Shown here piece by piece: positions 45,701 through 58,500 of a DNA stretch of 64,000 bases. The stretch comes from Macrostomum hystrix (Eukaryota; Animalia; Platyhelminthes). The stretch is taken from contig CATNEN010000030.1 in assembly GCA_950097015.1 (NCBI GenBank), forward strand, positions 2,976,001-3,040,000, written 5' to 3'. The first letter of the stretch is position 1, and each line of letters begins with the position of its first letter. The notes under the pieces are model-generated. The model searched no databases, was not told the origin of the DNA, and saw only the letters and a program-made list of their open reading frames with translations. The translations under genes and the position numbers were made by a program.

Positions 45701-47524
45701 CACTGTCCTCACATTCAACTTTGAGTAGCCTTGCACTATCCTCACATTCAACTTTGAGTAGCCTTGTGTCCTCACATTCAACTTTGAGTAGCCTTGCACT
45801 GTCCTCACATTCAACATTGAGTAGCCTTGCACTGTCCTCACATTCAACTTTGAGTAGCCTTGCACTATCCTCACATTCACCTTTGAGTAGCCTTGTGTCC
45901 TCACATTCAACTTTGAGTAGCCTTGCACTATCCTCACATTCAACTTTGAGTAGCCTTGCACTATCCTCACATTCAACTTTGAGTAGCCTTGCACTGTCCT
46001 CACATTCAACTTTGAGTAGCCTTGCACTATCCTCACATTCAACATTGAGTAGCCTTGCACTATCCTCACATTCAACTTTGAGTAGCCTTGCACTATCCTC
46101 ACATTCAACTTTGAGTAGCCTTGTGTCCTCACATTCAACTTTGAGTAGCCTTGCACTATCCTCACATTCAACATTGAGTAGCCTTGCACTATCCTCACAT
46201 TCAACTTTGAGTAGCCCTGTACTGTCCTCACATTTAACTTTGAGTAACTTTGTACCATCTTCGCGAATTAATCTAGCAAAGAAAACTGGCAGAAAATGGC
46301 ACACGAAGCAGCCCTCTATCGTACCGATCATCAGGAGGATGTGAATGGCCACGTGCCGATCCCGCGCCACCTGACTTTTCACCTGAATCGAGGTGCTTCT
46401 CTGCTGCTTGCGCAACTGAAATTAAATGAAATGAAAACTATAAGGTGCTGCACGACAGACAGACAGACGGACAGACAGACAGACAGACAGACAGACAGAC
46501 AGACAGACAGATTCCCAGCACAGACAGACAGACAGACAGACAGACAGATTCCCAGCACAGACAGACAGACAGACAGACACCCAGCACAGACAGACAGACA
46601 GACAGATTCCCAGCACAGACAGACAAGATTAATCTTCGGTTAAATACTCGTAGTTAGAATAGTTAGTTAGAATAAAGACAGACAGACAGACAGACAGACA
46701 GACAGACAGACAGACAGACAGACAGACAGACAGACAGACAGACAGACAGACAGACAGACAGACAGACAGACAGACAGAGAGACAGACAGACACCCAGCAC
46801 AGACAGACAGAGAGACAGACACCCAGCACAGACAGACAGACAGGCAGGCAGACAGGCTGCGTACGTGAGCGAAGATCTTCCAGTAGGCGACGCAGACGAT
46901 GCCTAGGGGCAGCAGGAACTGGCCGCTGAGCAGGCACAGCCAATAGGCTCTGTCGCCCGGTTGTCTGCTGGTCCAGTTCAAGTCGCAGGTGGACACGGAG
47001 CGGACGGCCACCACACGGGAGTCGCCGATGGCAGTTGGTAGAATCCAGGCCAGAGAAGCGGTCACGATGACGAGGATGCAGCGGACGGCAGTGCGGGTTG
47101 TCAGGCTGCGGCTGGTCAGGACGGAGCGGCAGCGCAGAGCGGACAGCGCAGCCAGCAAGTTCAGCGACGTGAGTCCTGTCCAGCCAGTCCAGAAGACGTA
47201 CCAGCGGCAGTACCAGGCGGGGAAGCGCCAGTCAGTTCGCCAGGCGGCCTGGACGTTGAGCAGTCCGGCCAGCACGCTGCACAGGAAGTTGCTGATGAAG
47301 CTGCAGCACAGCAGCCAGGCGAATCCGTTCCACAGCGACTTTGTAGCCAGGTGGGTGTACACGGCGAGTCCGTTGGCGACGATGGCGACTGCAAAGATGG
47401 CGCTGAAGGACACCGCGTCAACGTAGCCCTCCAGGACAGTCGGCAGGTCCTCCAGCTCATCAGGGCTTGATGTAGCACTGAAAACTGTCACTTCTAGGAT
47501 TGCTTTTGTATCATTGATGTCCAT
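42757..47524 (-). CDS. Opsin-like class A GPCR, paralogue 1, about 363 aa, 3 exons
   Basis: Exons 47524-46865, 46415-46325, 43097-42757 (phases 0, 1; 1092 nt). Seven TM segments; N55, W103, C110, R135, C187, FLLCWTPYA, and Lys296 in LLCAKAS followed by NAEFRRAL in exact bovine-rhodopsin register. Confidence 0.88.
43135..46240. repeat. 33/30-bp minisatellite (tcctcacattcaactttgagtagccttgcactg), about 3.1 kb, filling opsin-1 intron 2
   Basis: Direct tandem copies; both unit lengths are multiples of 3, which explains the 1048-1247-aa ORFs. Confidence 0.97.
46455..46855. repeat. (GACA)n microsatellite with cccagcac interruptions, opsin-1 intron 1
   Basis: Two blocks separated by an AT-rich spacer; starts right after the donor gtacgcagcc on the minus strand. 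Confidence 0.95.
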
Positions 47525-47784
47525 TGCCTAGAGTTCGTTGGCATCAGTATGACCAGATCTAGAGAATCGGACGGATAAACTTCATTTTCTTCCTGTCTTG
47601 TCCTACTCCCGGGCAAATTGCGGACCTCACGGCCAACCAGGATTGGAGAGATAGATAAACCCGACCCCTAGCCCAGTTGGGACAGTGTACAGTCAAAGAC
47701 TGCGCAAATGCTTTTCAGTCTGTGGACTGGGAAAGCAATGAGGCACTAGGGTGACTTTGTTAGTCTTTGGCGCACAGCAGCGTC

Positions 47785-56092: not shown

Positions 56093-56463
56093 AAAAAGTC
56101 TGCAGCTCAAAAAGCCTCCTGGACTACTTGAACTAAATTTTAAAAGCAAGAAGAAAACACCAGAAAACACCGACAACACAAATGCGTCAACAACTGAACA
56201 AAAGGGAAAGACAATTAAAAGCCACAACGGACATATCTACGAATACGGATGCCTAGTTACACAAGCAGGGCTTCCAGATAAAGCAAAAAGCCAAGTTACT
56301 CAAGGACTAGAATTGTTTCCCTTGAGCTGAGAGTCGAACTCCGAACCTCTCAGATAAAATATGTTTGAAAATGAAAGGAAATTGAAACGATCAGTCGATG
56401 AAATGGCACAACAAAAATGATCACATCAAAACAGATGCAGTGATTTCGCTTCGAAATGTCGCC

Positions 56464-58500
56464 TTAGAGTTCGGACACAAGCAGGCGCATTGGTGACGCG
56501 CTGACTGTCGGATCCTGCGAATAGGCCTGAGCAGACAGCTCCAAGGCGATGTTGTCATCCGAGTTGCTGTCAGCGGGGTCAGCGGTGGCGTAGGCAGTGT
56601 CAGCTGTTCCATCAGCGGTCCTGGCCTCCGGATTAGCGTCGAAAATATCTGCGCCAGCATTGTCATCGGCTGCATCCACGGCGGCGTCGACCAAAGCGAC
56701 AGTGGAGCGGCAGCCGCAGCAGCGGCCGAGGCAGTCCCAAAGCGGGCTGGCCAGCAGGGCCCGACGGAACTCGGCGTTGGCAACGAAGTGGGCCACCGCA
56801 GAGGCGGCCATGCTGGCCTTGGCGCACAGCAGGGCGGCCCGCGTCAGGCAGCGGTGAAGCTGGCTGCGCTGCTCCATCGGAGAGATCACCGCGACCGCGG
56901 CCCCCACGGCGTAGGGCGTCCAGCACAGCAGGAAGGCGCCTGCACGGTGTAGAAGATGCGACAGAAACTTAATTACTGAGGAGAACGGCCGCTACGGTTA
57001 GGCTTAGGTCCCTGAGTTCGATTCCGCGGCGGGGCCACATTCTTTTTTGGGGCGCAGCCGCGGAGAGAAGGCTTGTGTGGCTTGTGTGAGTGTGTGCCCT
57101 GCGTACAGTATCTGTGTGCGTGTGTGCTCAGGAGTCAGCGGAATGAACAGAATTGTCTCCTCGCTGCCTGCGGGTCTAACTGTCACCAAATGATTGCCCA
57201 CATGCCCTCCTGCAATTATTTTTGTCTTTATACTGTACGAATTTGTGGCACAAAAAGTGATCAGAGGTCAGAGTTGATCAAGGATACAGAAGTGCACTCA
57301 TAATGCATCGCCTACTAATCACGCAGACGATGTGGACGGCTACGTGCCGGTCGCGGATCGACCGGTTCTGAGTCTGTAGAAGGCTGCTAGTGCGGCGCTG
57401 CCGACCCAACTGCAATTTAGATTTTCGATGGCCAAATGATAGAGCAAGGTTGGATGCACAAGTCGCAGTTTTTTAACACCTGCTCAACTGTATTTTTCGT
57501 CCTCATTTTTGCCTGATTCAAGCAAAACATGTAATTTTCGCTTGTCTGTCAGTTTGACTTTTGCCTCAAAAATTAGTCTCAAAACTTTGTCTCTTTGGTT
57601 CATCAGCTCTGAAGTATTCTTCTTGAAGTAATTTCTGGGATTCTGTCATAGATGAGCAATTTATTTATTAAACTCGCACCTAATTCCCACAGACAGACAG
57701 ACAGACAGACAGACACCCAGCACAGACAGACAGACAGACAGACACCCAGCACAGACAGACAGACAGACAGACAGACAGACAGACAGACAGACAGACAGAC
57801 AGACAGACAGACAGACAGACAGACAGACAGACAGACAGACAGACAGACAGACAGACAGGCTGCGTACGTGAGCGAAGATCTTCCAGTAGGCGACGCAGAT
57901 GATGCCTAGGGGCAGCAGGAACTGGCCGCTGAGCAGACACAGCCAGTAGGCTCTGTCGCCCGGTTGTCTGCTGGTCCAGTTCAAGTCGCAGGTGGACACG
58001 GAGCGGACGGCCACCACACGGGAGTCGCCGATGGCAGTTGGTAGAATCCAGGCCAGAGAAGCGGTCACGATGACGAGGATGCAGCGGACGGCAGTGCGGG
58101 TTGTCAGGCTGCGGCTGGTCAGGACGGAGCGGCAGCGCAGAGCGGACAGCGCAGCCAGCAAGTTCAGCGACGTGAGTCCTGTCCAGCCAGTCCAGAAGAC
58201 GTACCAGCGGCAGTACCAGGCGGGGAAGCGCCAGTCAGTTCGCCAGGCGGCCTGGACGTTGAGCAGTCCGGCCAGCACGCTGCACAGGAAGTTGCTGATG
58301 AAGCTGCAGCACAGCAGCCAGGCGAATCCGTTCCACAGCGACTTTGTAGCCAGGTGGGTGTACACGGCGAGTCCGTTGGCGACGATGGCGACTGCAAAGA
58401 TGGCGCTGAAGGACACCGCGTCAACGTAGCCCTCCAGGACAGTCGGCAGGTCCTCCAGCTCATCAGGGTTTGGCGTCACTGTGTTCACTTCCGTTACCAT
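56464..58500 (-). CDS. Opsin-like class A GPCR, paralogue 2, about 400 aa, 3 exons
   Basis: Exons 58500-57868, 57409-57316, 56939-56464 (phases 0, 1; 1203 nt). Same intron positions as paralogue 1; FLLCWTPYA, Lys296 in LLCAKAS, NAEFRRAL; CCGC (possible palmitoylation) after helix 8; longer acidic tail. Confidence 0.88.
56975..57222 (+). mobile_element. SINE family A copy with internal deletion, opsin-2 intron 2
   Basis: ggtccctgagttcgattccgcgg...gggcgcagccgcggagagaaggctt joined directly to the 3' region, ending ctcctgcaattattt. Confidence 0.75.
57690..57857. repeat. (GACA)n microsatellite with cccagcac interruptions, opsin-2 intron 1
   Basis: Directly follows the donor, as in paralogue 1. 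Confidence 0.95.

Follow-up and report, generated by a model that had tools for sequence, protein, structure and literature searches.

Probable recent ectopic gene conversion of the TM1–TM5 region between two old opsin-like receptor duplicates of Macrostomum hystrix

Gene conversion between tandem opsins is textbook biology. In primates, de novo intrachromosomal conversion has been documented for the L/M cone opsins OPN1LW and OPN1MW (PMC3213168, PMC4919619), and the tandem cone opsins of teleosts (LWS, RH2 and SWS1) have become mosaic genes through repeated partial conversion (PMC7337190, PMC11291592, PMC8511661, PMC6389941). The GOT1 paralogues of Tigriopus californicus likewise have one part of the duplicate pair homogenised and other regions diverged (PMC3728101). 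The pair described here, genes A and B, lies in a window of 64,000 nucleotides of the M. hystrix genome (contig CATNEN010000030.1, positions 2,976,001 to 3,040,000); the coordinates below are those of the window. A and B resemble OPN1LW/OPN1MW in being adjacent opsin or opsin-like paralogues in the same orientation, in which tracts shorter than the gene, intron included, are homogenised while other segments stay distinct. They share with the teleost opsins and GOT1 the mosaic of homogenised and diverged parts. There are also differences: OPN1LW and OPN1MW are young and alignable throughout, whereas A and B are saturated outside two coding blocks, lack the DRY and NPxxY motifs and are at most putative light sensors. 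The teleost evidence consists of orthologue trees across species, ours of one genome, and compared with GOT1 both the gene and the phylum differ. The A/B case is a clean, ordinary example of a well-understood process and adds little that is new.

Each gene has three exons and the start codons are 11 kb apart. The exons were assigned from open reading frames and splice sites as follows:

46865–47524, reverse strand: gene A exon 1, phase 0, 660 nt from the Met to TM5; open reading frame and GT donor
46325–46415, reverse strand: gene A exon 2, 91 nt, ICL3 and the start of TM6; AG acceptor and GT donor read
42757–43097, reverse strand: gene A exon 3, TM6, TM7 with its Lys, helix 8, tail and stop
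57868–58500, reverse strand: gene B exon 1, 633 nt; open reading frame and GT donor
57316–57409, reverse strand: gene B exon 2, 94 nt; splice sites read
56464–56939, reverse strand: gene B exon 3, stop included

The products are 363 (A) and 400 (B) amino acids long; these lengths and the continuity of the frame come from exons joined by script, and all searches were made with single exons. Exon 2 of a further paralogue, C, matches that of gene A in length and position.

The initial annotation called the two genes opsin paralogues. Their membership of the class-A seven-transmembrane receptors is borne out by Pfam 7tm_1, which matches exon 1 above its cut-off in both gene A (E 8.6e-11, profile positions 2–178 of 260) and gene B (E 1.8e-11); exon 3 gives weak matches to the same profile at positions 211–250. 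The opsin label itself is moderately supported. It derives from the fold, from weak best matches and from the TM7 Lys, whose AKAS motif aligns with FAKAS of squid rhodopsin at the Schiff-base Lys, in an alignment that is itself weak (E 0.045). Named opsins (a Tripedalia c-like opsin, an Asterias pinopsin-like protein and an opsin-5-like protein) are among the eight best exon 1 matches looked up from a scan of 1.84 billion protein-cluster representatives, at 25–29% identity. That scan has a fish GPCR without a name at the top, and the galanin receptor is the best match among solved structures. At the end of TM3 the E/DRY motif is absent from the sequences of A and B, with LRC in its place; NPxxY is absent from TM7, where the alignment with squid rhodopsin has S-A-x-x-H. 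A and B are described here as putative divergent opsin-like class-A receptors. We also weighed the label of flatworm-specific orphan rhodopsin-family receptors (fwRhods) or PROF1, by published description only, and set it aside; the paper in question reports none of the fwRhods from ‘Turbellaria’, judged by its own criteria (PMC6114109).

The near-identity reported in the initial annotation was reproduced exactly. Positions 46865–47465 and 57868–58468 align without a gap at an offset of 11003 and are identical at 598 of 601 positions. The three differences are at 46897 (GTC/ATC, Val/Ile), 46934 (TGC/TGT) and 46943 (TAT/TAC), the last two being silent, and all lie within 47 nt at the TM5 end of exon 1. 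The tract divides into a core and a shoulder:

46944–47465, reverse strand: core of the converted tract in copy A, 522 nt identical to 57947–58468
57947–58468, reverse strand: converted tract core, copy B, partner of 46944–47465
46853–46943, reverse strand: tract 3′ shoulder, copy A, the final 79 nt of exon 1 and 12 unique intron bases, three differences from copy B
57856–57946, reverse strand: tract 3′ shoulder, copy B, partner of 46853–46943

The 5′ edge is abrupt and falls inside exon 1, at 47465/47466 (codon 20/21), leaving the first 59 nt of the exon in gene A and the first 32 nt in gene B outside the tract. The reading frame is intact across the tract in both genes. Two more differences occur in the first microsatellite units beyond the exon, so that 522 bp without a difference are followed by about 100 bp with five (roughly 95% identity). 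By our own approximation, made without running a tool, such clustering has a chance of about 0.02. The tract occurs just twice in the 220 Mb genome, in A and in B; a single 72% relative lies on a different contig.

Exon 1 ends at 46865 (A) and 57868 (B), with the GT donor next to it. The following 12 unique intron bases are identical in the two genes, and a (TCTG)n microsatellite then begins from the same base in both:

46677–46852, reverse strand: compound (TCTG)n microsatellite with which intron 1 begins in copy A, probably within the tract
57689–57855, reverse strand: compound (TCTG)n microsatellite with which intron 1 begins in copy B, same start base as in gene A

The start of intron 1 in paralogue C has no microsatellite. 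Identical intron bases and a common start base rule out copying through mRNA. A strictly exon-limited conversion templated by mRNA or cDNA was therefore rejected, the 5′ edge also lying within the exon, and the description of the homogenisation as exon-restricted has to be withdrawn. Each microsatellite is interrupted twice by TGCTGGGTG, at a spacing of 29 nt in A as in B, and the two differ in unit counts and variants. We had considered the shared interruptions as proof that the tract reaches about 180 nt into the intron; since the interrupted motif has 481 matches genome-wide, the shared architecture is weak evidence and was downgraded to weak support. The microsatellite may have served as the break site or as a homology anchor.

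Outside the tract the two genes are very different. Local alignments against shuffled controls gave no significant A/B similarity upstream, in the N-terminal codons, in distal intron 1, in intron 2 or downstream. The N-termini and C-tails, described earlier as unrelated, are not alignable between A and B, and exon 2, described as strongly diverged (91 versus 94 bp), is identical at 52 of 90 aligned nucleotides. The many substitutions noted in exon 3 were found too. The exon has one block that aligns well:

42863–43097, reverse strand: exon 3 TM6–helix 8 block, copy A, 84.5% identical to 56705–56939
56705–56939, reverse strand: exon 3 TM6–helix 8 block, copy B, partner of 42863–43097

Its 84.5% identity extends over 238 nt with the differences evenly distributed, and it is possibly an older conversion tract. 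Divergence per segment was calculated by the Nei–Gojobori method. Between A and B the tract has a dS of 0.013 and a dN of 0.002, the exon 3 block a dS of 0.377, and exon 2 a dS of about 1.4, albeit on 22 silent sites only. The per-exon comparison suggested with the initial annotation is thus non-uniform, the tract standing at 0.013 and the other segments between 0.38 and about 1.4. Judged from exons 2 and 3, A and B are old duplicates. In the tract region A and paralogue C differ with a dS of 1.17, so the silent sites of exon 1 are free to change. A different contig offers a contrast: a member of this family was recently duplicated in tandem there, and 94.6% identity is unbroken over 3.5 kb, non-coding DNA included.

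A GENECONV-style permutation, following the check proposed earlier, found a longest A=B run of 163 among 430 sites variable in A, B and C; the permuted maximum over 100,000 shuffles was 42 (0/100,000). Similarly, the longest identical run of 522 nt compares with a maximum of 96 in 20,000 permutations (0/20,000). Chance is excluded as the origin of the tract identity.

We consider that one gene's 613–789 bp were very probably copied onto the other by recent ectopic (interlocus) gene conversion. A DNA break in one gene would have been repaired by a non-crossover route with the paralogue as template, and the copied span would begin shortly ahead of TM1, at exon 1 codon 21, take in everything up to TM5 and the splice donor, and end in the intron 1 microsatellite. 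Because its two ends lie within exon 1 and within intron 1, the tract points to ordinary DNA-level conversion and not to the exon replacement named in the initial annotation. Only a recent, non-reciprocal transfer between old duplicates accounts at once for the low dS, the copy-specific flanks and the intact frame. The two-level tract together with the exon 3 block suggests that conversion was repeated (Fisher P about 0.009, from few differences and an exon 2 with 22 silent sites). Conversion may have recurred on segments with enough remaining homology while ICL3, both termini and all non-coding DNA drifted past alignment.

Among other origins, a non-homologous route (unequal crossover, template switching or insertion of a duplicated fragment) to a partly duplicated gene or a replaced exon appears improbable. 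In its favour, neither flank of the tract has any detectable homology left, so that guiding homology is not directly demonstrable, and microhomology within the microsatellite could have promoted template switching. One unequal crossover by itself would nevertheless leave one flank common, yet both flanks are copy-specific in A and in B, and a double exchange is therefore needed. Any non-homologous route must also account for a frame, a splice donor and a placement with respect to the conserved start of TM1 that are all exactly preserved. Coding identity of about 85%, which is enough for homologous repair, has been retained, as seen in the exon 3 block, and the length of the tract is typical of gene conversion. 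Extreme purifying selection on the nucleotides of exon 1, for example through an overlapping functional element, has almost nothing to recommend it beyond the fact that the receptor is most conserved in the region that the tract specifies. Silent sites of the same exon are saturated against paralogue C, the identity reaches into the intron, and the tract edge is abrupt rather than graded. The silent sites are homogenised too, so selection at the protein level does not explain the tract.

That the identity was created in the computer, reads of one paralogue having corrected the other or the consensus having been cross-copied, is very unlikely. The published M. hystrix assembly, if it is the one used here, underwent polishing with Arrow and, on short reads, with Pilon (PMC10468722), which gives such an error an opportunity. 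It was built with canu from long reads of an inbred line (PMC10468722), and 0.6 kb is then unlikely to have been copied in error between regions whose flanks are unique. The block of 0.6–0.8 kb is much shorter than the long reads used, and cross-mapping of short reads requires copies that are already very similar. Moreover, the copies retain three substitutions and their own microsatellite unit counts and variants, each is in frame with unique flanks on both sides, and the tract ends where alignable homology ends, which is what recombination would produce.

Paralogue C was also used to ask about the direction of conversion. It agrees with A at two of the three variable tract sites and with B at one, a split that fits mutation after the event and is silent on the donor. 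A word-based homologue search with exon 1 as query returned nothing at E ≤ 0.001, and identity did not exceed 45% for any protein in the full HMMER scan; neither search yielded an orthologue of A or B. The only Macrostomum match of the homologue search, PAA90994.1 of M. lignano, was rejected as an orthologue, having a split exon 1 and grouping with the four-exon paralogues D–G. GC-biased conversion was considered and leaves no tract-specific sign, a GC3 of 0.83 in the tract being no higher than the 0.77–0.91 of the A and B exons that were not converted.

Exon 1 trees would show A and B as a very recent duplication, while exons 2 and 3 show an old one. Dating and assignment of orthology in this opsin-like flatworm receptor clade should therefore proceed segment by segment. 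It is conceivable, though we think it doubtful, that the pair keeps the same sensor with a different output. Recurrent conversion would reset TM1–5, and TM6–helix 8 less often, while selection would hold ICL3 and the C-tails apart; the two opsin-like receptors, which carry the Lys and lack DRY and NPxxY, would then have a common pocket for chromophore or ligand and different partners. That the receptors have the same TM1–5 and differ in ICL3 and tail, as the initial annotation proposed, follows directly from their sequences. A and B form a natural chimera pair, in which TM1–5 is the same bar one Val/Ile, TM6–helix 8 is 83% identical between the proteins, and ICL3 and the tails are unrelated; if the receptors can be expressed, the pair could help to map the parts that set partner coupling.

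Genes A and B, the neighbouring opsin-like receptor genes in the window, lie in the same orientation with their start codons 10,976 bases apart (11,003 − 27). The predicted exons are:

47524-46865, minus strand: gene A exon 1, GT donor
46415-46325, minus strand: gene A exon 2, GT-AG introns
43097-42757, minus strand: gene A exon 3 including the stop, product 363 aa
58500-57868, minus strand: gene B exon 1, GT donor
57409-57316, minus strand: gene B exon 2, GT-AG introns
56939-56464, minus strand: gene B exon 3 including the stop, product 400 aa

Frame and product length were checked on exons joined by script. 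Each of the four introns begins with GT and ends with AG, and the two genes agree in intron phase. Paralogue C, on another contig, has the same three exons, with an exon 2 of 91 nt.

Pairwise alignment of 46865-47465 (A) with 57868-58468 (B) gives 598 identities over 601 positions without a gap. This agrees with the initial annotation, which had read three differences at an offset of 11003, one Val/Ile change and two silent, clustered at the TM5 end. They are located at 46897 (GTC/ATC, Val/Ile), 46934 (TGC/TGT) and 46943 (TAT/TAC), at the 3′ end of exon 1. Genome-wide (220 Mb) the tract is present in two copies; the one further relative, at 72%, is paralogue C. Using a GENECONV-style test, the longest run of sites shared by A and B was found to span 163 of the 430 sites variable among A, B and C (maximum of 100,000 permutations, 42), which bears out the suspected conversion signature. 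Without interruption, A and B are identical over up to 522 nt; 20,000 permutations gave at most 96.

Divergence between A and B (Nei-Gojobori) is strongly uneven: dS and dN are 0.013 and 0.002 in the tract (200 codons), 0.377 and 0.081 in the TM6-helix 8 part of exon 3 (66 codons), and about 1.4 and 0.48 in exon 2, which has only 22 silent sites. The N-terminal codons and C-tails are only as alike as random sequence; no significant similarity was found between the N-terminal codons (20 in A, 11 in B). The unrelated termini, strongly diverged exon 2 and many substitutions in exon 3 noted initially thus all hold. When the loci were self-compared, the sole other collinear match was a gapless stretch comprising the initial 238 nt around the beginning of exon 3 (84.5%), all others being inverted dispersed repeats or minisatellites. 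Local alignments found no similarity above shuffled controls beyond the intron 1 microsatellite, in intron 2, upstream or downstream. Within the tract A-C and B-C both have dS 1.17; the silent sites of exon 1 can therefore evolve freely, which rules out selection as the cause of the A/B identity.

At its 5′ end the tract stops abruptly between 47465 and 47466, within exon 1 between gene A codons 20 and 21, which coincides with the start of the alignable receptor core. On the 3′ side identity runs beyond the donor site over 12 unique intron bases, after which a (TCTG)n microsatellite starts at the identical base in A and B; each copy is interrupted twice by TGCTGGGTG, at a spacing of 29 nt. The microsatellite is absent from this position in paralogue C. 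The interrupted motif is common genome-wide (481 exact matches to a 25-mer query), so that the microsatellite counts only as a probable part of the tract. This puts the tract length between 613 bp (46853-47465) and about 789 bp (if it extends to 46677). We note that (TCTG)n interrupted by TGCTGGGTG recurs in this genome as a compound repeat, its matches clustering in long arrays on several contigs, for example C7:12366646-12367398.

The homogenisation is not, as first proposed, exon-restricted, since one edge lies inside exon 1 and the other in the intron. Inclusion of intron sequence excludes both an mRNA-templated route and exon replacement; of the two initial suggestions, conversion or exon replacement of TM1-TM5, only conversion stands. 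In A as in B, the sequence flanking the tract on either side is specific to that gene. Such flanks cannot arise from a single unequal crossover, but can from a non-crossover double exchange, that is gene conversion. Reading frame, donor site and position relative to TM1 are exactly kept, as follows automatically from homologous repair; with insertion of a fragment such an outcome would be improbable. The assembly is a canu build from PacBio data on a highly inbred line, with Arrow and Pilon used for polishing (PMC10468722). An assembly artefact appears very unlikely: a 0.6-kb repeat with unique flanks is easily spanned by long reads, and short-read polishing could not bring roughly 15% divergence to 0.5%.

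Five differences at the 3′ end all fall in 46844-46943: the exon accounts for three and the initial microsatellite units for two. None occurs in the other 522 bp. By our approximation, three random substitutions would fall in a 47-nt span of 613 nt with P about 0.02. Differences in the 84.5% block of exon 3 are evenly spread, and silent differences distinguish it from exon 2 (Fisher P about 0.009). Identity between A and B is thus layered (100%, about 95%, 84.5%, and saturation elsewhere, exon 2 being near-saturated), for which the simplest reading would be repeated conversion of segments still homologous enough. By sequence comparison, the pair looks nothing like E and F, two family members on another contig that form a young segmental duplication in tandem; between them identity is unbroken at 94.6% for 3.5 kb, including non-coding DNA. 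E and F (C39:6027834-6033429 and 6040400-6049147) also have an adjacent 85.8% segment, a common minisatellite and identical exon 3 block translations.

Partial gene conversion of tandem opsins is well documented in primates (PMC3213168, PMC4919619) and teleosts (PMC7337190, PMC11291592, PMC8511661, PMC6389941). The A/B tract is a real, statistically clear and well-delimited case of this familiar process, here affecting a new gene family. Though unsurprising, it is of use both to annotation and in providing a natural chimera pair.

A profile search matched exon 1 of both genes to Pfam 7tm_1 across TM1-TM5, and exon 3 weakly to its TM6-TM7 part. Among solved structures, exon 1 best matches the galanin receptor and squid rhodopsin (E around 1e-5). 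The eight best exon 1 matches in a 1.84-billion-protein scan include opsins (Tripedalia c-like, Asterias pinopsin-like, opsin-5-like; 25-29% identity) and a sole flatworm protein, M. lignano PAA90994.1 (45% over 75 residues). Exon 3 aligns closest to squid rhodopsin (weakly, E 0.045), placing the Lys of AKAS on the Schiff-base Lys and S-A-x-x-H at the NPxxY position; DRY reads LRC. A fair label would be “opsin-like, Lys present, both activation motifs absent”, with retinal binding at most putative. The family here comprises two clades: A, B and C have three exons, and exon 1 is split in D, E, F and G, the clade to which the M. lignano gene also belongs. Its annotation is a truncated model beginning in TM4 (NIVC01000099.1, locus 8363-21345), with TM1-TM3-coding exons upstream at 8363-8662 and 9926-10261. 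Protein database searches with exon 1, including the large scan, found no orthologue of A or B.

Minisatellite density around A and B is unusually high. Gene A intron 2 is nearly all a 3.1-kb minisatellite (43138-46246; about 97 copies of a 33-nt unit, 93% matches), whose several open frames give spurious ORFs of >1000 aa. The 8.9-kb gap between A and B is mostly tandem arrays (47784-56093; periods 19, 27, 21, 16/34, 20 and 4 nt), and upstream of gene B there is a further array of 60-nt units (59723-60623). A dispersed repeat, probably a small transposable element, occurs in both orientations at 82-91% identity (42357-42665, 39993-40278, 57006-57198, 61163-61391), downstream of gene A, in gene B intron 2 and upstream of gene B. 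Elsewhere, 29381-31144 (minus strand) holds a single 587-aa ORF with a full-length amiloride-sensitive sodium channel (ASC/DEG-ENaC) profile match (E 1e-49), which looks like a channel gene without introns. Exon-sized plus-strand ORFs have Pfam matches at 1846-4505 (TRPM SLOG and TRPM2-like domains), 12559-13467 (ion-transport/polycystin-type channel segment), 18925-19734 (aldehyde dehydrogenase fragment) and 24037-25380 (FHA and G-patch protein).
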